Assembly: GCF_020745735.1 (NCBI RefSeq)
Contig: NC_083412.1
Coordinates: 96,128,320-96,192,319 of the forward strand
Length of the DNA stretch: 64,000 nucleotides
Reading direction: 5' to 3'
From: Hemiscyllium ocellatum
Taxonomy: Eukaryota
Shown here: positions 1,226-62,294 of the stretch, piece by piece
Layout of the letters: every line of letters starts with the position of its first letter
Numbering within the stretch: position 1 is the first letter of the stretch
Program-made: the position numbers and the translations under genes
The notes under the pieces: generated by a model
What the model was told of the DNA's origin: nothing
Databases searched by the model: none
What the model saw: only the letters and a program-made list of their open reading frames with translations

Positions 1226-1500
1226 ATCCTACCCTCTCCCTATCCCAAATGTGCTGTCATTGATCCCAGTGGCCCTCCGAGAGAAATGGGAATAATCAGC
1301 CAACTATTGATTTTTGCTGGAAGGATTCGTGCAGGTTCAGATGTTAGCTGAGAATTGAACCTTGAGTCTTGCTTGACAGTGATAATCATCTTCTCAATCA
1401 CATGTTGAACATTTGGGTCAGGTTGCAAAAGATGATAACATATATATGGTTGAACTGAGCAGATGTGCCTGTGATCATTCTCACGGAGGGGAGCAGTAAA

Positions 1501-1605
1501 TGACGCTTTTGTGGAGTTGTTTGACAGAGGTGATGGAATGAAACTTTTCAGATAAGTTAAGATTCATCTCTTATCATCTCTTAAAATGATGACATTACAA
1601 TCGCC
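1501..1605 (+). repeat. Local duplicate of 2676-2775 (truncated copy of the candidate signal-peptide exon)
   Basis: GTGGAGTTGTTTGACAGAG...AAGATTCATCTCTTATCATCTCTTA.AATGATGACATTACAAT shared by both sites. Confidence 0.85.
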
Positions 1606-2755
1606 TTATTTGTGAAGGATATAATTTCATGAGGGATTCTTCTGTGGTGACCCTCAGCTAAACTACCACCAGTCACCTCTTTCTAATGAGTGAGCAGCCG
1701 TATGGTTCAATATTGACTACTTTTGCTAATCATATAATCCTGTCCTAATGTGCGTCAGTTTGTAATGATTTGCATTAATATGGTGTCTTAATAGAGAACC
1801 AAGTCCCAAGGTGCTTCATAACAGTACGGCAACATAAAATTTGTCACTGAACCACATTAGGGTCACAAGACAAGTGAACAAATGCTTGGCCAAAAAGGTA
1901 TGATTTGTGGAGCATTGCAATGGAAGACAGAGAGAGAGAGAGATATTTAGAGTGGAAATTTCCAAGTTTCATATCTCTGCAGTTGAAGACATGGCCATCA
2001 GCTGTAGCTGGACATCAGGCATGCATTGGAAGGCAGAATTACAGGACTGCAAAGATGTTGGAGGGTTAAAGAGCATACTTGGTAGTTCTCTGGATTAATA
2101 GGCCCATTAACAACTCAATTGACCTATTATATGAATTGTTTCAAAGCTAACTTGTAGAAATGCATTAATTTGATTTATTCTTCTCCCATGTACTTGGGTG
2201 CAATGAAAAGTTTTGTTTTACCTGCAGCATAGGCAGATCAAACCATACAGAGTGCGTTAGGGTAATAGACAGAGCCAGGAAGACAGTGTTACAGCTGCAG
2301 AGAAAGTGCACATAGAGTGAAAACAGCATTAAATTTAAAATTTGAGAGATGCCTTCAGAATTCTCATAGTAGCAGGGAAGAAGATGTTCTTGAATCTATT
2401 GAAGCTGTTCTTGAATCTATATGATGGGTCTGTATTGAGCTTGACCTGTAAAACAGCAGTGGACCACAAAACAACAGATCTGGTTAAGTGATGGATGGTC
2501 AAGGATGCACACGTACCACTGGACCCAGAGAAATTCAGCCCATAACATACCTCTCCTTTTCTCTCATGCGAACTATTTGCCCTTAGCTTCTATTGCCATT
2601 TCCTTTCCAATCCCACCAATTTCAAAGTTTCACGAAGATACCTGAACACTTATGGCCCAGGTGTGAAATTCCTCATGACACTTTAGTGGAGTTGTTTGAC
2701 AGAGATGATGGAGTGAAACATCTCAGACAAGATTCATCTCTTATCATCTCTTATA

Positions 2756-2804
2756 ATGATGACATTACAATTGCTTTGTGCAAGTGTAGCTGGACTGCCA
2801 GTTG
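2756..2804 (+). CDS. Candidate secreted-protein gene, signal-peptide exon (MMTLQLLCASVAGLPV-G); may extend 5' to an acceptor at 2727 (DKIHLLSSLI...)
   Basis: Hydrophobic stretch with V-A-G|L-P cleavage-like site; consensus donor G|GTGAGT at 2804/2805, phase 1; 81-nt intron to ...CTCCTAG at 2885 keeps the frame open. Confidence 0.55.
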
Positions 2805-2885
2805 GTGAGTATCCTGCTAACTTAGCCTCTGACCTTAGTATGCGCATGAGCCATCAAGTCATAAACTTGTACCGTTGACTCCTAG

Positions 2886-3101
2886 GACTTTGGGAAATAT
2901 TCCTAAAACAACGTGTGCCTCGTCGAGACGCATTTTGTATCAGACATCTTCTAGAGTTCAATGCGTACCATCGGGACTTTGAAATGAACCTTCCATGTGC
3001 TAAGGACCTGGCAGCTAAGATGCTTCAGCTACACACCACAACTACCACCACCATCAGTACCACAGCTGCTTCTCCTACTTACAGCCTGACTCTCCATACA
3101 G
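2886..3101 (+). CDS. Candidate gene, module exon 1: GLWEIFLKQRVPRR-DAFCIRHLLEFNAYHRDFEMNLPC-AKDLAAKMLQLHTTTTTTISTTAASPTYSLTLHT
   Basis: 216 nt (72 codons), open in phase 1-1, acceptor GTTGACTCCTAG, donor CAG|GTAATG; unique non-repeat sequence. Confidence 0.6.
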
Positions 3102-4467
3102 GTAATGTCTTGTATGTTTTCCTTGTGTTGTACCAGAATCCAGCCTCCCTGCTGTCTCTTGGCTATTCACCAGGGCCAGTGCTTGTTTTGAATGAAATGG
3201 AGTGAACGTAGAAGGACCAAGAGGAAGCTTATGAATGAAGGTTTTCTTTATCAATTAAATGCTAACTTTGAAAAGAGAAGTTTGGTGAAAGATGCTGAGA
3301 CAACAAAAAGAAATTACACTGTATTTGTGGTGTGTGTTTGGCTTGTTTATAACTCTGCATGTCATATAATTTACATATAGATAAAGGAGTAGTAAATAAA
3401 CCAGATACTGCAATGTTTAGAGGGAGAATGGGAACAATACACTTAATGATAACTTACACAGTCTTTGAAGGGTGATAAGGTGAGTGGTGAAGGATGTTTG
3501 AAAAGTAAAATCTGGATCCTTGGTATTAACAGAGACAGAGAATAACAAAAGGAAGTAATTGTAAACCTTTAAACATCACCAGTGAGGTCTCAGGTGGCAT
3601 ATTATCTCAAATTCAAGGCAGCATGCTATGGGAAGGATTTGGAGAGGGTGCAGAGGACATTTACTGGAATGGTGCTGGGAATATGGGACTCTGGTTCCTG
3701 GGAATGAGGAACTCTGGTTGCAAGACTGAAGATGCTTGGCTTGTCCTTAAGATTAAAGGCGGAGATTTCAAAGAGGTGTCTAAAATTCAAATCCATTTTG
3801 AGAGGGCATTTTTTTAAACATAGACTCTTGGGATTTGGACGTCACTGGCTAGGCTCTCTTTTATTGCCCATCTCTAATCGCCAGAGCCCAGGTAAGAGTC
3901 ACCCACATTACCGTGGGCCTGGAGTCACACATAAGCAAGGATGGGAAAGTATTGCATCACCTGGCAGAAGGGTCTGGGGCTGGAGGACCCTGGTTTAAAG
4001 CCAATAACAAAAGAGCCAGGGTGACAATGGGGAGAAGGTCTTTGATGCAGTAGGTTCTCAAAAGGGAATGAATGTGTACTTGTCAGGGCCAGAGTTTTCA
4101 GGACAAGGGAAGCAAGTAATACAGCTTGTTGTGGTCAGAATATGTGAGTACAAGTATTTTCTTTGAGCCAAAAACTGATTGTTTTTCTGCATTATAAGCT
4201 TTTATAACTCACTGAAGGTGAAATCGGTGATTGTTGCAGCCCAGAACAGGTAAGGAGAACCCAAGCAGCATTGCGCACTGTCACACCCACAGAGTACAAA
4301 ACCAGAAAACACACCTGCTGAATGGGTATCACCGTTGAATGGCATTGCATTACTGCTGAAGATTGGTATCAATCAATCAGTTGATGTCACCCAGCTTCTC
4401 CATTTTGAATCAGAATACCTGTACACCACAGATCACTGCTGCAGACACAACGCAGAGATTCTCCAAC

Positions 4468-5113
4468 AAGTTGCCACCCAGGTAAATAGTGCTGTGAGGA
4501 AGGCATATGGTGTACTGGGCTTTATTGGCAGAGGAATTGAGTTCCGGAGTCCTGAGGTCATGTTGCAGTTGTATAAGACTCTGGTGCGGCCTCATCTGGA
4601 GTATTGTGTGCAGTTTTGGTCGCCATACTATAGGAAGGATGTGGAAGCTTTAGAACGAGTGCAGAGGAGGTTTACCAGGATGTTGCCTGGAATGGTAGGA
4701 AAATCTTATGAGGAAAGGCTGAGGCACTTGGGGCTGTTCTCATTGGAGAAGAGAAGGTTTAGGGGAGATCTGATAGAAGTGTATAAGATGATTAGGGGTT
4801 TAGATAGGGTAGATACTAAGAACCTTTTACCGCTAATGGAGTCAGGTGTTACTAGGGGACATAGCTTTAAATTAAGGGGTGGTAGGTATAGGACCGATGT
4901 TAGGGGTAGATTCTTCACACAGCGGGTTGTGAGTTCATGGAATGCCCTGCCCGTATCAGTGGTGAACTCTCCTTCTTTATGGTCATTTAAGCGGGCATTG
5001 GATAGGCATTTGGAAGTTATTGGGCTAGTATAGGTTAGGTAGGATTCGGTCGGCGCAACATCGAGGGCCGAAGGGCCTGTACTGCGCTGTATCCTTCTAT
5101 GTTCTATGTTCTA
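4468..5113 (+). mobile_element. Young 5'-truncated CR1 LINE with uninterrupted ORF2 C-terminus
   Basis: ORF 4335-5033 contains LYKTLVRPHLEYCVQFWSPY...LERVQRRFTRM...RGDLIEVYK...RFFTQRVV..WNALP; (TTCTATG)n tail. Confidence 0.95.
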
Positions 5114-7830: not shown

Positions 7831-8225
7831 GTTTAACTGAGCATGAGTTGCCCCCCAGCTGGATTGACTGGTTAATGCTGTTGGGACAAATCATCTCTTG
7901 TTTTAATCTGAGATTGCTTATTTTGCTAACTTTGTTTTAAATACCCTGTTCAGATATGTTGTGACACACTTCTGGAGCAGGTGGGACTTAAACACAGGTT
8001 TCCTGGTCGAGAGGTAGGGACACTCCCTCTGCATGACAAGAGCCCCTTTACTCCTGGCTTTGTGTGATGGTGAAAATGATTTCACTGCAGGTTTAACATA
8101 ATTCCTGACTGTTATTCCCATTGACTTCAGAGTCAAGACCTTCTAATTCCTATTCTTTTCACCTGAAAGCATTTCTCTTGTGAAGGGAAAATTACACCAA
8201 TGTAATTTATTTTATTATTACAGTT

Positions 8226-8543
8226 AAGATGATTAGGGGTTTAGATAGGGTTGACAATGAGAACCTTTTTCCATGTGTGGAGTCAGCTATTACGAGGGGG
8301 CATAGCTTTAAATTAAGGGGAGGTAGGTATAGGACAGATGTTAGGGGTAGATTCTTTACTCAGTGAGTCCTGAGTTCATAGAATGCCCTGCCAGTAACAG
8401 TGGTGGACTCTCCCTCTTTATGGGCATTTAAATGGGCATTGGATAGGCATATGGAGGATAGTGGGCTAGTGTAGGCTAGGTGGGCTTGGATCGGCGCAAC
8501 ATGAGGGCCAAAGGGCCTGTACTGTGCTGTATTTTTCTATGTT
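8226..8543 (+). mobile_element. Young CR1 3' end, same subfamily as 4468-5113
   Basis: High identity to 4785-5105 (AAGATGATTAGGGGTTTAGATAGGGT...CATAGCTTTAAATTAAGGGG). Confidence 0.9.
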
Positions 8544-9486: not shown

Positions 9487-9945
9487 TTTTTTTATTCATT
9501 TGTGGGACCTGGGCATCAGTGATTGGCCAGCACTGATAGCCCGTCCCTATTTGCCCTTGAGAAGATGGTGGTGAGCCACTTCCTTGAACTGCTGCAGTCC
9601 AGTTGCTGTGGCTCTCCAGTGCTTGATACAACTGAATGGCTTGCTCGGCCATTTCAGAGGGTGGTTGAGAGTCACCACATTACTGTGGGTCTGGAGTCAC
9701 ATGTAGGCCAGACCAACTGAGGATGGCAGATTTCCTTCCCTGAAGGACATGAGTGAGCCAGATGGGTTTTTCCAACAAGTAACAATGGCTCATGGTCATC
9801 AGTCGACTCTTAATTCCAGATTTTATTATTGAATTCAAATTCCACCATCTGCCATGGTGGGGTTCGAACTCAGGTCCCCGGAACATTATTCTTGGTTTCT
9901 GGATTAATAGGCGAACGATAATACCATTAGGCCATCACCTCCCCA
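9487..9945 (-). mobile_element. tRNA-derived SINE sharing its 3' tail with the second LINE family
   Basis: Minus 5' GGGGAGGTGATGGCCTAATGG (A box), GAGTTCGAACCCC (B box), body GGAAGGAAATCTGCC; further copies at 11685-12025, 20450-20950, 29740-30080, 58355-58740, 61815-62290. Confidence 0.8.
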
Positions 9946-10346
9946 ACATTTTACAGATGTTATGAAGATGTGTGACTCAAACATTACTGAATGATATCAT
10001 TGACTGGACCCTATAGAAAGTTTTCTTTGAACTGAAAAGGCATTGGATACAATAGCACGAATGCTGCATCTGCAAGGATCAGGTATTCAGGTGGGAGACA
10101 TCCAATCAACTGGGCTTTCAGAGAGTGAGTGTGTGTTTGTGTGTATGAGCGTGTCTTCAAGTGTGTATTTGGGAGTGTCTGTTAGTGTACGTTTCATAGT
10201 TTCATTGTAATAGAAGCAGGAGTAGGCCATTTGGCCGATCAAGCCTGCTCTGCCATTCACTAAGATCATAGCTGATCTATCCATTGTCTCAGCTCCTCCC
10301 ACCTGCATTATCCCCATAATCCCTAAATTCCCTGCCATGCAAAAAC

Positions 10347-10348
<2 letters not shown>

Positions 10349-10377
<29 letters not shown>

Positions 10378-10663
10378 ACCAAGACTGTGTGTGAGAGAGA
10401 CTGTGTGGGTGTATGTGTGTGTGTAGATGTACGTGTGTGTGGATGCATGTGTATGTGGGGGGTAACTGTGTGAATGTGAGACTGTGTGGATGTATGTATG
10501 TGTGGAGGACTGTGTAGATGTGTGACTCTGTGTGGATGTATGTGAGACTGTGTGGATGTATGTGAGCGTGTGTGTGTGTGTGAGAGGGAGAGACTGTGTG
10601 TGTGAGACTGTGTGGATGTGTGTATGTGTAAGAGAGAGAGAGAGACTGTGTGGATGTGTGTGT
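10349..10663. repeat. (GT)n microsatellite and degenerate TG-rich simple repeat
   Basis: Direct reading. Confidence 0.95.
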
Positions 10664-11353
10664 CATCTTCATTAATGAGATTGCATTAGTATTAAACTAG
10701 TTATTCCTAGTGACTAAAGAAATCTGACTTTTCCTAATATGAAGGCTAATACAGCTCAAGATGATGTTTGTTGGTTTTATCTTCACATCGTTGAGATGTA
10801 CAATTTGTTTTGATGAGTGGAGCACTGGGACTAAAGAAGAATCAGTGTACCTCTCCAACCTCAGTGTTAACACAGAGAACACTATGTCCGATATCGTAAA
10901 TAAGAGTTTGGATATATATTCTTGGGTCAGAAAGCAGACTTTCTGAGGTGGAGAGAAATCATTACAAGCTACAAATACTGAGCAGTGATGAGGACAATCC
11001 ATCTATCCAACAGGCAGAGTAGAGAGCTGAGCCAAGAGCCATATGGTAACACCAAACAGGAACTAAACCAGTTGACCATGTTGTTATTACTGGTGCCCTG
11101 CTTCTCTTGCAGATGGCATGATTTTCTCTTCAGTGAACCAAATGGATGCTTATTCCCTTTCTGTGCACTTCCAATGTTCAGCTCCAATGTAGAGATGAAT
11201 AGCAGGGTGAGGGGGGTAGTGGAGGTTATGTGGTAGTTCAACACTGGGACCTCGCAGTCAGAAAGTCTGTGTGCTCACTTCACAGCGTGTAACACCCAGG
11301 GCTTTGCAGGGAAGCTAGCAACCCATCAGAAAACCTCTACTGTTGAATCCTAG

Positions 11354-11560
11354 GAATCCCACGAAGCTATCGTCATCGACGTTTCACATGGCAACCGAGG
11401 ACTTGCAATCAAGAGTTCCACCGGATGATGCGATTCCATCACCCATTGTTTCGAAGGTTTCATAGGATTAGGCCTTGCAAGAAGCAGCCCACAACCACAG
11501 TGTCTCATAATGAAGCAACAGAAACTATCACTCTCCCATACACGTCTCTTCAAACCTCAG
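11354..11560 (+). CDS. Candidate gene, module exon 2: GIPRSYRHRR-FTWQPRTCNQEFHRMMRFHHPLFRRFHRIRPC-KKQPTTTVSHNEATETITLPYTSLQTS
   Basis: 207 nt (69 codons), open in phase 1-1, acceptor GTTGAATCCTAG homologous to that of 2886, donor CAG|GTAACT; same architecture as module exon 1. Confidence 0.6.
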
Positions 11561-12149
11561 GTAACTTTTTCATCATCTACTCTCGACTCTTTGGGGTGCA
11601 GCCCAGACGTGAACCTCTGATCAGTTTTGCTATGTCCTGAGATGGACTGAATTCGGCTTACGGTGTGCTTGAGCACAGTAAGAGAGGTGGTGACCTGCTG
11701 GCATTATCACCAGATTATTAATCCAGAGACTCAGGTAATGTGCTAGGGGGTTGGGGTTTGAACACAGTCATGACAGATAGGGGAATTTGAAGTCACTACA
11801 AAAAGAAATTTGGAGTAAGAGTCTAATAATGATCATGAAAACTACTGCCAACTGTTGTAAAAACCTATCTGGTTCACTAATATCCTTTAGGGAAGGAAAT
11901 CTGCCTTCCCTACCTGGTCTGGCCGGCATGTGTCTCCAGATCCATGACAATAGGTGCTCTGGGCAATTAGGGATGGGCAATAAATGCAGGCCAGTACTGC
12001 ACACATTTTGTGAATGAATAAAAAAGTTGGAGATGGTTGGTGAAGATATGCAAACCTGAGTCTGCTTTCGGAGCTGTCCAGGAGAGTTATACATTGGGAC
12101 AGCTTTTGCAATGAGTTGATGTTTGATTTAGATTTCTGCTAAAGCAGTC

Positions 12150-29235: not shown

Positions 29236-30139
29236 TATACAAGATTATTCAATAAATCCCATCAATGCTCACTTGCCTGAGTGCAGACCTTATCTTACCA
29301 CAGTGATCATGTACATCTACCTGAGAGACACACCAGTGGACTTGTTTGGCTGCCCTCAGGTCTGGGGTTGGGGGCATTTGCCTGGATTATGTGTTCAAAT
29401 CTCAACAAATGACCTGACAGCGCTTATATCTTGAAAGATAACAGGAGGAGTCCAAACTGGCCAATGACTTGAAATACAGGTCTTATCTTGTTGCTGTTTA
29501 TCAGTGAAATGGCCACTGCCTTTCCTCCACAATAAAGTTCATTCCAGAAGCAAGACATGTCTGTCCTTCGAGTGGGGACTGAACACATAACCTTCTGATA
29601 GTGCTAGCCACTGGGCAAAGCCTAATCGAGGAGCTATTGATTTAAATTTGAGAGATGGCCCCATCCTACATTGATACAAAGTACTGACTGCTCCAGGCAA
29701 GTACAAGGGTCATGGGGGAGAGTTCAGGCTGTATCAAAGTCGTGGTAATGTCACGTGATGAAAAGTTCACAGTCTCCAGGTTGATGTTCTGGAGATATGA
29801 GTTCACATCCCACTTCTCCAGGGCGTATGGTGAAATTTAAGTTCTGGTAAAGTAACCTTGGAATTTTCAAAAAAAAGAATTAATCTAAGGGTGACCCTGT
29901 CGATTGTTGTAGACATGCATCTAGTTCACTTAATCTCCTTTAGGGAAGGGAATCATCCGCCTTGACCTGGCTGATACAACATGTGACTCCAGACCCCCAG
30001 CAATGTGAATGACTCTTAAATGCCCTTTGGGCAATAAGCACTGGCCTTGCCAGTGAGACCCATGTCCTATGCAAAATATCCTTTCCTAGTTATGCAGTAC
30101 ACCAGGTAAGGCCTGACCAGACCTTTACAGAGCTAATTA

Positions 30140-50090: not shown

Positions 50091-53000
50091 CAATTCATCT
50101 GGGAGTGGATGGTAACCACACAATTATCAGTGAATGCTGCTCATTAACATCCTTCAACAGAAGGAAATCTGCTATCTTTGCCCAGTCTGTCCAGCAGGTT
50201 ACTCCAAACCCCAGAAATGTGATGGACTGCCATCTGCCCTTGCCTCTCAATACAAAGGGTGGACAACAAATGTGGAACTTGCCAGTTAGACCCACATTCC
50301 CTGAATGAAGAAAGATCTACAGTGTAGCCATCCAATGGAAAATGGCCACAGGCTCACCCTTTATCATAAATGTACATCTACTTTCAACAGAGAATTGCAT
50401 TCATTTTACAGCAAGAAACGCATTATTAAGTCCAACAAGTCTGTACACATGTTTATTCCCCACTCAAGCCTTCCTCATCTGTCCTATCAACAGACTCTTT
50501 CATTCCTTCCTCTCTCATGTGCTTATCACGCTTCCCATTAAGTGCATCAACATTATTTCCTTTAATCTCTCCTTGTGGGAACAAGTTCCATTGCACCCTC
50601 TGGGTAATGAAGATGCTTCAGATTCCCACTTGATTTCTTCATCATCATCATCCTCTGCTGATGGCCTTTCATTTCAGTCTTCTACATCAATGTAATCACT
50701 GCCTTTATCAGGTAGAATGATTTTCTTCTTGTTTCAAAAATATACTTTATTCATAAACTATCTGTAAGCAAATGCAACAAATATAAAACAGGTCTTTGCA
50801 AAAGTGGAATTTTGACATTCCTCAGGACATCCTTAATCCAGTTACAACAAAAGAAAGGAATTTTCTCATCATGAAAGGAAACTATTAACATTCCAATTAA
50901 GTCTATGTGAGTATCTCAAAATGCAACAAACCCTCATACCTTTGTGGGATAAGATGATGACCAAACACAGAAAACTTTGGTATGTATATCTTTTCCCACC
51001 CTTTACCTGCCTGGGGGACGTTCTGACCCATCTGTTACTGCCATCCCGGGTGCACTTGTTGAAATGGTGACACTCCCGCTGCTACATTTCCGCATCTAAG
51101 ACAGAGATAAAACAAAATGGTCTTTTTTTCCGAAATACTCATGAGTCTTTGCAACTCCTTACCTCCAAAGGAAGTGGGAAGCGGAATCCTTGAATAAGGC
51201 AGCGATAGATTCTCGATAGGCAAGGGGCTGAAATGTCAATGGGGGTATGCAGGAAGGTGGATTTGAGGTTACAATCAGATGTGCCGTGACCTTATCGAAT
51301 TATGGAGTGGGCTGGAGGGGCCAAATGGCCTACTGCTGCTCCTAACTGACATTATCACCTTGTCAGATGTACAGTCCAGTAATGCACATTAAAGTCTTGG
51401 GGAAAGTTCACACGCACTGCTTGCTGTTTGGAGAATTGCAGAGTTCCGTCATCCTGTAGGGCTGAATGATATAGTTGTTTGTCATGGGACCCTGGAGTCT
51501 GTACATGCGACCTCGATGTATCCTTTCAGCTGTTGATACTTCTCTTATTTGGCCGAGCACCGTGTGCCTCTTTCAGAGCACAGATGGGTGTTTTGGTAGC
51601 CACTGAGACATTCCACTGAGGGAAGAGGTTTAACACTGCGCATATTGTTGAAGAAAGATCAGATTTCTAACCCTCTCCTCACCCTGCACCCACCACCTCC
51701 CCCCCATCTCCCCCACCAGATAGCTGCTCCATGAAAAGCAGATCAATGCATAAAGGCTCTGTCAGATTATACCCACCATGAAAAAAAAATCCTAATCCCT
51801 TCCCCCCCAGAGGGATAATACTAAAGTGAAAGGAAGACAATTCTGGGGACTGATTAAACATTCTAGGTGTCTTTCAAATTGAGAAGAAAAGACACAAGAG
51901 AAAGACTGGGTTGGTGCGATAAGAGATATTTAAGGATTACCAGCGACTTAATTCGGAGATTCTTGTGGTGAGGGTACATTGAAACAGCCATGGGACACTT
52001 CTTCAATCCATCCCTTTCACTTTCCAAGCACTGACCACGATAAAAGGCTTCCCTTTTTCTTTTGGCTGGGTTTAACAGAAACTGCTGGGGGCAGGGTTGG
52101 TGGGGGAGAGGAATTCAACAGACATTCCGAGGAGAAAGCTTCAAAGCTGCAGCGACCGGTTTCCTGCCGTTTCTGGTTTTAAAGTGTGTCTTGTTGTCCC
52201 GAATCGGTAACGGTTTATTTCCCTTATTCTGCCCACTTGCACCAAAGGGATAAATGTTTGGATTGCCAGCTGAATTAGTCAAACTTAATGTTTAAATGGT
52301 GTTGACCTATTGCTCAACAAGTTCCATTTCAAAGTTTTGAATGTCCCACACTCTACGTAGAAAAAAAAACCCAAAGGACTTGAATTGATACACTGAAGTG
52401 ATCTAAGCCTTCTCAAAGTGCTTTCAGTTTTTTATTTTAAGTATTCACCATTGGCACAGCGTGGGAACTGTGTGTTTTGTTCTGTGCATTCGTGGGATGT
52501 AGGCAGCATTTATTGCCCGACTCTAATTGTCCTTGAGAAGGTTGTGGTGAGCTGCCTTCTTGAAGTGTAAGGACACACACAATACAGACAAAGAAAGTGA
52601 GTTCCAGGATTTTGGCACCAATTGTAACATAGCTGAAATCTGGAAGGTGGGGAATCTTGTAGCCGGTGGTGTCCCTGTTGTCTGTACTCCTAGGTGTCAA
52701 CAGGCAGGAGTCATTGGTTTGAAAGGCACTTATGAATGAGCCCTTGGTCAGTTAGTGCAGTGCATCTTTTAGTTGGTATGCACTGCTGCTGCTGCGTGTT
52801 GGATGTAGAGTGAGTAACTGTTGAAGGTGGTGGATGGTATTGATCATCTTGAGTGTTGTGTAGCACTCATCCAGGCAAATGGGAAATGTTCTATCACACT
52901 CCTGACTTGTGGCCTGAAGGTGCTGGACAGGCTTTGGCTCTAACTATGCCCTGTACATGTCATCCCAATTGGGCAGGTTTAGTGTTATGGGGCATAGGGA

Positions 53001-57265: not shown

Positions 57266-57422
57266 NNNNNNNNNNNNNNNNNNNNNNNNNNNNNNNNNNN
57301 NNNNNNNNNNNNNNNNNNNNNNNNNNNNNNNNNNNNNNNNNNNNNNNNNNNNNNNNNNNNNNNNNNNNNNNNNNNNNNNNNNNNNNNNNNNNNNNNNNNN
57401 NNNNNNNNNNNNNNNNNNNNNN
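57266..57422. other. Assembly gap (157 N) next to a TG-rich simple repeat
   Basis: Run of N. Confidence 1.
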
Positions 57423-57622: not shown

Positions 57623-58927
57623 GCAAAGTCATGAACATTGTTTAGGCTTAGACTTTAAAGTATCACACTTTATTGTACACTAATGCAAGTTTCTTTAAAT
57701 TCTTTCATTGGATGTGGGTGATATTGGCTGGCCCAACATTTATAGCCCATCCCTCATGGGTCTTGAACTTGCTGGACCATCACAGTGACAAGTCCATCAC
57801 ATTGCCGTGGGTCTGGAGTGATGTTTCAGCCAGACTTGGTAAGGACACCAGATTTCCTTCCCTAACATTCTTCAGATGAGTATTGATGACAATTGTTATA
57901 TGGTTTCCAGCTTCAGCACCCAGGTGTTTACTGAATTCAGATTTTAGTATCTGCTATCTAACTCAGAACTTTAAGCTAAGGTTTCAGATTACTAACCTGC
58001 ATTGACAATACCACTCCATCAACACTTTACAATGCTCAATATTGCCTTAACTGCAATCAACCTGCCTCTGACTTGTAATTACATTGGTTAAGGACTGAAC
58101 TGTCTCTTTCCTCTTCACGTCCATGTGCTCCAATGACCCTTACGCATTTAAAAAGCTTTAAATCCACCCACATTGTGCTGTTTACACTCAGTGATGTGCA
58201 ACTCTGTGACATCATTGCATGGTTGTTCCAGGATCCTAAAGGCCTGAAACAACATTCTGTACATTTTTGTGAGTTTGTGCTTTGCCAGTATGTGTGAGCT
58301 GGTAAATTTGTCTCCCTATCCATCTCTTTGAGTTTGTGTGCTGTCTCTGGGAGGGGGGACAGTGGTCAGTGATAATCTCACGGTATCAGTAATATAGCAA
58401 ACCCAGATGGTAACTCTTCAGATATGGGTAAATCATTAGACACCACAATAACAAGTAGGATTCACTCTGGAATTGAAAGCTCATTTCATGATAGTGCTGT
58501 GAAGCTGCAGTTCATTGTTATGAAAATACACATGTCTGGTTCACCAGTGCTGTTCAGGGAAGGAAAACTGCCTTCCTTACCAGGTCTGGCCTACTTGTGG
58601 CTCCAGACCCACAGGAACATGGTTGAATTTATCTGCCCTCTGAAAACCATTCAAATGGGTCAACAGCTCGAAAGGGTTGGCACATCACTACCTTCTTGAG
58701 GGGAATTCAGAACGAGCAATATATTGGCCGTGTGAGTGATGTTCACTTTCATGTTTTCATAGGGTTTGGGTGCTACTGGCAAAGCTTGTGTTTATTGCTC
58801 ACATCAAATTGCCCTTGCAAAGGTAGTGGAGAGTTGTCTTCTCAAACTACTGCTGTCCAGAGGGCACGGGTACACCTACCGTGCAGTTTATTTTTGGATT
58901 TGGAGAGACAGTAATAAAGCAGTAACG

Positions 58928-59546: not shown

Positions 59547-62294
59547 GGTATGGTATGTGTGTGCTGAAGTGTATTACTGAATTTATGACTCTGTGTATCC
59601 GTGCATCGGAGGGCCAGTGTGCATGATCACATTGGAAAGCAGGCCACTGCTGGTTCGTGTGTTCATTAACACACTAGTTTAATCAGGGAACTCAGTGGGG
59701 CTGCCTGTATTGAAGGGACAGATTCTGAGACAATGTCATTTGGTTCCACCACATGAAGCTAAAGTACCAAGCAAACCCTGCCAGTGTTGTGCAGATGATT
59801 AATTCCAAAGACTTTCTGCAGTGACTCCCTGTTCCACCCAGGTGTAATCCAATGAAGACTTCAATTCATTATCCAGCACAAAATCCCCCTGACACCCCCT
59901 CCCAATCTCTTTAATCTGCTACTATGTAAAGCAACACTGGAGCTGAACAAACTGCATTAACTGAGGCAGAACTTATGAAATGAGGCTTGATTCCTCTTGG
60001 ATATTTCCCTTGTGTTTTTGGATTTGTTTTTCTAGCTGATATGAAGTGATCTCTTGGGCTCATTAAGCTTGCACATTATCAGTGGAAGCTCAGTATTATT
60101 TTATTCCAATTCCACTTTAAAATGTCAGGCATGAATGCAGGGGGTCCGAAATTATCTGGAACACAAAAATGACTTTAGTGTTTCAATGCAAGCTCCTTTT
60201 TTTAAACCAAACATCTCTGTCTGAGCATTAACCTCTCTCCTTCCTCTTTGGAAAATGGAGTATCACCTTCCCCAAGTATAGGTATATTTAATCAATCCAC
60301 TCAGGCAGATAGTGAGACATCTGGGGCAAGTTGAACTTGGGACTTCTGTTCCAGAGGTGGGGATACTACTACAAAAACCCCACCTCTCTATCCATCCCAA
60401 CAGTATATTTAACTTAGTTGCTGCTTTGGTGAGGGAAGGGATTGAAAAGTGAAGGTGGGCGTGTTTATCAAACTCTGAGACCATGGAGTGGACCAGTCAA
60501 GTTGGGTGTTACATTTACCCACAGGTGGGCTTTTGAGCCTTTGGATTAGTTTCAGATTTGGTGTGCGAGAGCTTAGACCAGTTGGTGTGCTCCTTGCTCC
60601 ACTTAGCTTCCCAACCAGTCACAGAGGTGGCAGGGAGATATAACTTTTATTGAAAAAAAGCCAAGTGAAAATGAGGGTCTAGATTCGAAACAATAGCTTG
60701 CTCCCTCTCCATGGATGCTCCCTGTTCTGCTGTGATCTCCAGCATTTTGTGTTTTCAGAAGTACCTCGAGTCCTTGCTAAATATTGAGTTGAACTTCCTG
60801 ACTGTCACTATTATGCTAATCAGGGAATCAGAACATCTGGTTAAGTGGTTTACATGAGCAGGAGATTGTCAAAGGCTGGAGTTGAGGAGGTGCAGTCCTT
60901 GGAAGGAGTGGATTAGAAAGAGGGGATTTGTGAAGCATTTTGACTCCATAACCCAGTGAGGGTCTCAGGGGTGTGGGGATTGTCATTCTGGGATTGCAGC
61001 TCAGGGGGAAAGCAAGGAAAAAAAATTCAGAACAACACAGAGTACAGTAAAGATCAATAAAGAGGACAGGGTAGCATACTTTTAAGTACTTTGAGAATGT
61101 TGATTCATATTTTTTGAACAGGATTGGTTGCTGAAATCTTCAGAAGAATGTGGTAAGGTTTATTTTAGAGGGCTTTTGAAGATTGCACAGGCTTTAAAAA
61201 AAAGCTTAACAAGTCACTCTTTAACCACTCATCAAGTTTATATAGCCCAACAACCAGAACAAACACAGCTGGATACCTTCACATCATCTTAGAACTCTGC
61301 ATATTTCAGAGCAATTACTGTCGAGCATCTTGATTCTGATTTATGAGCTGGGGGCAGCTCAGATCGTTCTGAGGATTTAACAAAAACCATATGCCAACGG
61401 GGTGGCATGGTGGAAAGTAGCAGCCATCCTTATTGCTAAATTGAGACTGGGATTTCAGAACGCACCGCAGTGACAAGGAAAACCTCGTTTTCAGCCTCTG
61501 CAGTCGGGAATCACGGCTAATTTGAAAAATCAACCTCTGGTTTCTTCACCGTGCTGGGTTCCATTGTTCTACCATTGGTGATTTTGCCTTCACCTGCCTG
61601 GTCCCTAACCTCTGGTAGTCTTATCTATCTCCATCCCCAAATTCTCTCAGCTTCTTGACGTCTTGACTCTTTCAAGATGCTCCTTCTTTGGTTAAGTTAC
61701 TCCAATATCTCCTTCGGTGCTGAGGGTCAAATTTTGTTTGGATATTTTAGGATATTTTATTGGCTAAAAAGTGCTATATATACACTTTTAGGATGCAAAA
61801 ATGCTTTTGGTTTTGGGGAGCCTATGGCCTAGTAGTAATGCTGGACTATTAATCCAGAGACCCAGTTAATGTTCTGGGGACCTGGGTTCAAATCCCACAC
61901 GGAAATTTTAATTCAATTAAAAAAAATCTGGAATTAAGAGTCTTATGGTGACCATGAAACCATTGCTAGGCAAAAGTGAGGATTGCAGATGCTGGAGATC
62001 AGAGACTAGATTAGAGTGGTGCTGGAAAAGCACAGCAGGCCAGGCAGCATCCGAGGAGCAGGAAAAATTGGCGTTTCGGTCAAAAACTCTTCTGCTGTTT
62101 GCCAGGAAAAACCCATCTGGTTCATTAACATTCTTTAGTGAAGGAAATCTACCATTGCTACCTAGTCTGGTGTATATGTGAGTCAAGATACACAGCAATG
62201 TAGTTGACTCTTAACTGGGCAGTTAGGGATGGGCAATAAATGCTGGCCCAGCCAGTGATTTACATGTCCTGTGAATGAATTAAAAAAAAACAGA

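Follow-up and report, generated by a model that had tools for sequence, protein, structure and literature searches.

Two stretches of open reading frame, each preceded by a similar string of bases at a candidate 3' splice site, raise the question of whether this locus in Hemiscyllium ocellatum carries a duplicated pair of coding exons and, if so, what kind of selection, if any, has acted on them. We analyzed both stretches, termed module exons 1 and 2, within the window, that is, the whole 64,000-nucleotide (64-kb) stretch of DNA. The reading that we tentatively prefer, at a confidence a little short of even, is that they are candidate coding exons, both of phase 1-1 and duplicated in tandem, in a small orphan gene that is unannotated and would encode a secreted protein, as judged from the DNA and its conceptual translation.

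Architecture of the module exons

The initial annotation had assigned coordinates and characteristic strings to both exons, all of which were present in the DNA at those places, and the exon lengths that it gave, both multiples of three, were confirmed (Table 1). The exons are located on the same strand, approximately 8.2-8.5 kb apart, in the same phase and with a similar length. Only one of the three frames is open in each exon, and this frame, which reads from the third base and corresponds to phase 1-1, is identical in both. Since both exons are multiples of three and share a phase, inclusion or skipping of either would leave the frame intact, making joint or cassette use possible. Compared with MAGGTRAGT, the donors agree at 7/9 and 8/9 positions, levels that are reached by just 4.3% and 0.8%, respectively, of the GT sites in the window, and the pyrimidine content of the acceptor ranks at the 96th percentile when all AG sites are considered.

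Table 1. Positions of the candidate exons and associated features in the window (a slash marks the splice junction)
Feature	Position	Strand	Description
Module exon 1	2886-3101	+	216 nt; phase 1-1; acceptor TCCTAG/GA; donor CAG/GTAATG
Module exon 2	11354-11560	+	207 nt; phase 1-1; acceptor TCCTAG/GA; donor CAG/GTAACT
Acceptor-proximal motif, copy 1	CCATCA 2851-2856; core 2863-2887	+	core overlaps first two bases of exon 1
Acceptor-proximal motif, copy 2	11323-11355 (CCATCA 11323-11328; core 11331-11355)	+	core 21/25 identical to 2863-2887
Putative first coding exon	2756-2804	+	ATGATG start; 16 codons + 1 base (MMTLQLLCASVAGLPV); donor TTG/GTGAGT
Putative intron	2805-2885	+	81 nt; last ~35 nt carry motif copy 1
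Partial duplicate of 2675-2777	1500-1607	+	108 nt; 86% identical; 1.17 kb apart; direct
Copies of the ~165-nt repeat family	20807-20963, 62131-62287, 57692-57867 (-), 50153-50317, 11883-12025, 29936-30077, 3813-3965 (-), 58551-58700, 9610-9747 (-)		

The predicted peptide of module exon 1 contains RR at codons 12-13, Cys17, a 19-residue loop, Cys37 in the context LPCAK, and a Thr-rich tail that includes seven consecutive Thr residues. That of module exon 2 contains RHRR at codons 6-9, Cys17, a 23-residue loop rich in Arg and His, Cys41 in the context RPCKK, and again a Thr-rich tail; the loop spacing is C-x19-C in exon 1 versus C-x23-C in exon 2. In both exons, the AC-rich DNA of the tail sits in the Thr frame. 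The initial annotation stated that an RR site and two cysteines had been retained. The cysteines are kept, the first at codon 17 in both exons and the second in a PC-x-K context in both; basic sites are present in both exons (PRR at codons 11-13 and RHRR at codons 6-9) and are out of register. The only in-register Arg common to both exons is R9 (CGT), and neither payload is followed by a basic site. Module exon 2 is unusual in composition, Arg accounting for 11 and His for 7 of its 68 residues, and its RR is unremarkable because so many of its residues are Arg. Toward the 3' ends, the string ACTCTCCATACA of exon 1 (3089-3100) matches ACTCTCCCATACA of exon 2 (11530-11542), which has one extra C; the donor of exon 2 is 18 nt farther past this shared string than that of exon 1, with the frame kept.

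A putative leader exon and the predicted product

The putative first coding exon has a donor that matches MAGGTRAGT at 7/9 positions, and it ends in phase 1, the phase in which module exon 1 starts. When joined in frame, this exon and the two module exons encode 157 residues with no stop. The leader, MMTLQLLCASVAGLPV, is moderately hydrophobic, with Kyte-Doolittle means of 1.4-2.1 over the first 14 windows, and is devoid of a basic n-region; we consider it putatively signal-peptide-like.

Under the tentatively preferred reading, the short first exon would provide a hydrophobic, signal-like N-terminus and would be spliced in frame to module exon 1 and then to module exon 2. Each module would encode a basic site, a loop that could be closed by a disulfide, and a Thr-rich linker that is probably O-glycosylated. 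The duplication would be old, with the coding bodies near saturation, and the splice signals would have been preserved since then, along with some 25-35 nt at the acceptor, the reading frame, the position of Cys17, and the PC-x-K context. We infer that the gene would be transcribed and spliced, and that its product would be secreted, disulfide-bonded, cleaved by a convertase, and glycosylated. RHRR of module 2 fits the furin consensus R-x-R-R, and module 1 has just the dibasic PRR. The predicted net charge is about -1 for the loop of module 1 after RR and about +8 for module 2 after RHRR. A structure model of the exon 1 peptide (AlphaFold, single-sequence) was helical, with low confidence (pLDDT 55).

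A more specific proposal, which we regard as unlikely, is that the locus encodes an elasmobranch precursor of the host-defence type, consisting of a signal peptide, a near-neutral helical disulfide loop, a strongly cationic disulfide loop rich in Arg, His, Phe, and Trp, and O-glycosylated Thr linkers. Such a product would share with the defensin- and cathelicidin-type precursors the logic of an anionic propiece combined with a cationic peptide, achieved here by exon duplication.

CpG retention and the state of the reading frames

The CpG observed/expected ratio of the window, 0.26, is typical of methylated vertebrate DNA. Both module exons are local CpG peaks, with ratios of 0.54 for exon 1 (0.11-0.23 in its 300-nt flanks) and 0.82 for exon 2 (0.12-0.29 in its 300-nt flanks). 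Of the 15 CpGs in the two exons, 11 fall on codon positions 1-2 when read in the open frame, corresponding to CGN Arg codons (4/6 at these positions in exon 1 and 7/9 in CGN Arg codons in exon 2), with a binomial p of 0.0018 that is somewhat optimistic because clustered Arg codons were counted. In 271 control open stretches, the CpGs were distributed uniformly over the three phases. CpG decays quickly in this genome and a constraint on Arg would keep CGN codons, so that the observed pattern is the one expected under purifying selection. Thus, CpG retention in the Arg-codon phase suggests purifying, rather than diversifying, selection. The proposal in the initial annotation that the exons are under selection agrees with the open frames, with the CpG enrichment found only in the two exons, and with the Arg phase of these CpGs; its suggestion that this selection may be diversifying is unsupported, the CpG pattern being of the purifying kind. 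The codon comparison of the exon pair gave dN = 0.99 and an undefined, saturated dS over 32 alignable codons, and with dN of about 1 and dS saturated, a codon-model test for diversifying selection is uninformative on this pair.

We searched for homologues of the predicted peptides and for other parts of the gene. Among 1.84 billion cluster representatives, phmmer found no homologue of the exon 1 peptide at E <= 0.001, and exon 2 had no candidate in a library of 5.8 billion proteins, with no shared word set. A control query, the reverse-transcriptase open frame at 4254-5030, found 4492 proteins in the same library, including annotated proteins of Stegostoma, Mustelus, Chiloscyllium, Hypanus, Leucoraja, and Mobula. 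These matches indicate that shark and ray annotations are present in the library and that none of them contains these exons. Because short queries pass the threshold only for fairly close relatives, the blank result excludes an annotated close orthologue, not a fast-evolving one. Nothing was found in Pfam, PDB sequences, or Rfam or by a tRNA scan, and metagenome contigs searched both by motif and by peptide contained no orthologous DNA. The ESM Atlas language-model recognition scores were 1742 and 1184, compared to the value of 2300 that is reached by 91% of known-family proteins.

Within the 64 kb, no further module was detected by motif search, by tblastn, among phase 1-1 open segments, or among all open stretches, and there is no candidate module between exon 1 and exon 2; the best-scoring other segment, at 50494, was unrelated. 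The cassette-exon array envisaged initially is therefore not borne out, as the window contains just two modules and no orthologue or homologue was found in the libraries searched. No convincing stop-bearing terminal exon was found, and the one that had been placed near 18850-18942 begins inside a repeat copy. Read-through models, with stops at 3203 or 11638 and AATAAA at 3395 or 11979, received no support, and exon 2 lacks its own leader. No Pfam domain was found in the ten long open stretches of the window that looked most plausible, so no neighbouring gene supplies context.

The best-surviving alternative, which we consider somewhat unlikely, is that the exons are true duplicates that are not under coding selection now. 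They might be remnants of a gene that has died, or they might belong to a non-coding transcript whose exons are constrained solely in the 3' splice-site region, and the frames would be open by luck. The empty protein libraries, the low recognition scores, and the missing terminal exon are all consistent with this explanation, as is the almost complete loss of similarity between the exon bodies. A further sign of local decay is the partial duplicate of 2675-2777, a region made up of the first seven codons from the putative start onward and the adjacent 5' sequence, in which a TATAA string occurs; the copy diverges after ATGATGACATTACAAT and reaches a stop after nine codons. However, just 3.6% of positions per frame begin a run of 69 or more codons free of stops, and both copies are open. 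Neutral old DNA of the window would have a CpG ratio of about 0.26, well under the values of the two exons, and CpGs in the Arg-codon phase are not expected of non-coding or long-dead sequence.

Homology of the two exons

The alignment of both exon regions was compared with shuffled controls, a check that had been proposed initially, and its outcome was divided. The 60 nt upstream of the acceptors exceeded the shuffles with z scores of 5.9 (global) and 7.6 (local), and the exon bodies did so in global alignment (z 2.8-3.5) and not in local alignment (z ~0); the downstream introns also gave a z of ~0. Local alignment of the two regions recovered just the pre-acceptor 25-mer, with a score of 30 versus 18.9 +/- 2.3 (maximum 27) for the shuffles, and the similarity ends about 40 nt upstream of the acceptor. 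The two 25-mer cores are the sole matches of their kind in the window. Over the first 84 coding nucleotides in register, 32/84 (~38%) are identical (p 0.007 versus all window offsets), and the global alignment of the two peptides has a z of 3.2. By tblastn, there was no in-frame match between the peptides at E < 100; the sole match to exon 2 was rejected as lying in a different frame.

We also listed all 1113 exon-like segments on both strands, defined as an AG followed by 60 or more open codons and a GT in phase. Module exon 2 ranked first of the 1113 in upstream similarity to exon 1 (z 5.2), and in body similarity it ranked second or third among the non-overlapping segments; its phase and strand are those of exon 1. 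Similar 25-mer pairs numbered 903 in the real window versus 3 in a shuffled window, and in 3 of the 903, the exon 1/exon 2 pair included, both copies are followed in the same frame by open runs of 65 codons or more. One of the other two pairs, 42347/46349, sits in open frames with resembling translations and looks like a repeat. The upstream rank, the near-top body similarity, and the 3/903 result uphold the view that exon 2 is an old duplicate of exon 1. Judged by these comparisons, the two exons are very probably homologous, with the homology near-erased in the body.

An origin by chance, in which similar 25-mers precede open stretches that are otherwise unrelated and the common Cys and Thr features are coincidences noticed because they were looked for, is unlikely in our assessment. 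It draws on the weakness of the 25-mer by itself (blastn E = 1.1 with 2.2 kb as query and the whole window as target), on the pairs that a shuffled window still yields, on the tblastn result and the absent local similarity of the exon bodies, and on the number of windows scanned, among which some flukes are expected. With the 25-mer this weak, significance comes from its position and the accompanying features, and these are difficult to reconcile with chance: the copies have the same register at the AG and the same frame, both are open, and they combine top ranks among the 1113 segments with the identity in register and the peptide alignment score given above. Nor does chance account for the surplus of CpGs in the two segments or for the codon phase of these CpGs, and a rough product of the terms is well below 1e-4 per window.

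Comparison with known gene systems

Tandem exon duplication is known to yield cassette or mutually exclusive exons (PMC9013439), including human cases (PMC9741552). The candidate exons resemble such duplicates in being neighbours on the same strand, in the same phase, and of similar length, with residual homology and preserved splice signals. Their homology is beyond chance and weak in the coding body. In contrast to the known vertebrate cases, which occur in conserved annotated genes and have clear protein similarity, they would belong to a candidate orphan gene and their similarity is nearly gone.

Secreted peptide precursors with multiple copies can be built from repeated exon modules, as in the caerulein genes of frog skin. 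The locus shares with these precursors a signal-like first exon and repeated modules with a basic site and a spacer, but it has two modules only, their payloads are unrelated in sequence, and the basic sites are out of register. Of the features expected of a convertase-processed precursor, cleavage sites in register are absent, and no recognisable homologue or known mature peptide was found in the libraries searched.

There are genes for toxins and defence peptides in which the exon encoding the mature peptide diverges faster than the flanking intron and the signal sequence (PMC7285919). A superficially similar relation is seen here between the exon-adjacent intron end, which is 84% identical, and the less well kept exon body (~38% in register). 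However, the conservation spans approximately 25-35 nt instead of whole introns, and the CpG pattern points to purifying constraint. The Thr/Ser/Pro/Ala-rich run after each loop is reminiscent of mucin-like linkers, but it is very short (~10-25 residues) and has no tandem repeat array, and its glycosylation is putative.

If the exons are real, automatic annotation would have missed a lineage-restricted shark gene whose product is a small secreted protein, and in this gene an exon duplication would have been followed by near-complete divergence of the loop, with the frame, cysteines, and splice region kept. In this case, CpG retention in the Arg-codon phase could serve to point out coding exons that are absent from the annotation of heavily methylated genomes. 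If they are not real, the locus is a caution that exon-like open frames and a similar splice-site string can be convincing on sequence alone.

Repeats and other features of the window

The window is rich in repeats, and the other CpG-rich spots checked were all repeats, one near 4861-5051 in the reverse transcriptase and one near 21921-22251 with a 51-nt tandem array. Strings resembling GTTGA(C/A)xCxTAGG occur at 20873, within one of the copies of the window's most abundant repeat family, and at 52688. These observations would suit an origin of the exons as open-frame fragments of a mobile element, or of the 25-mer from a repeat family, with the open frame and CpG content reflecting a fairly young insertion, but we consider this highly improbable: there is no other copy of either segment in the 64 kb, both exons lie outside the in-window repeats, none of which covers 10700-11683, a profile of the most abundant repeat family gave no match to either exon at E <= 100, the exon peptides find no proteins where the reverse-transcriptase control finds thousands, and copies of an element diverge evenly, unlike the high identity seen here over 25 nt and near-random sequence elsewhere. 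The profile used, built from nine aligned repeat copies, led us to reject a repeat origin for the 25-mer.

The 259-codon open stretch at 4254-5030 (+) is the C-terminal part of a LINE-type reverse transcriptase, with the best named matches from birds, sharks, and rays, and a second partial copy is located at 8225-8502. Given its richness in CpG, it probably inserted fairly recently. Positions 10090-10700, inside the putative 8.2-kb intron, are taken up by a long, imperfect array that is TG-rich and microsatellite-like, with units such as GAGACTGTGTGGATGTATGT, and that contains spurious long His/Thr-rich open frames on the minus strand. At 22173-22357, there is a CpG-rich tandem repeat with a period of 51 and 3.6 copies (94% matches), which lies inside open frames of both strands (21908-22389).

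The short repeat family of about 165 nt has at least nine copies in the window; it contains GGGCAATAAATG and often has an A-rich tail at its end. AATAAA is twice as frequent in the window as in shuffled sequence (86 versus 43.6 occurrences), an excess to which this family probably contributes. A run of 157 N at 57266-57422 represents an assembly gap or mask.
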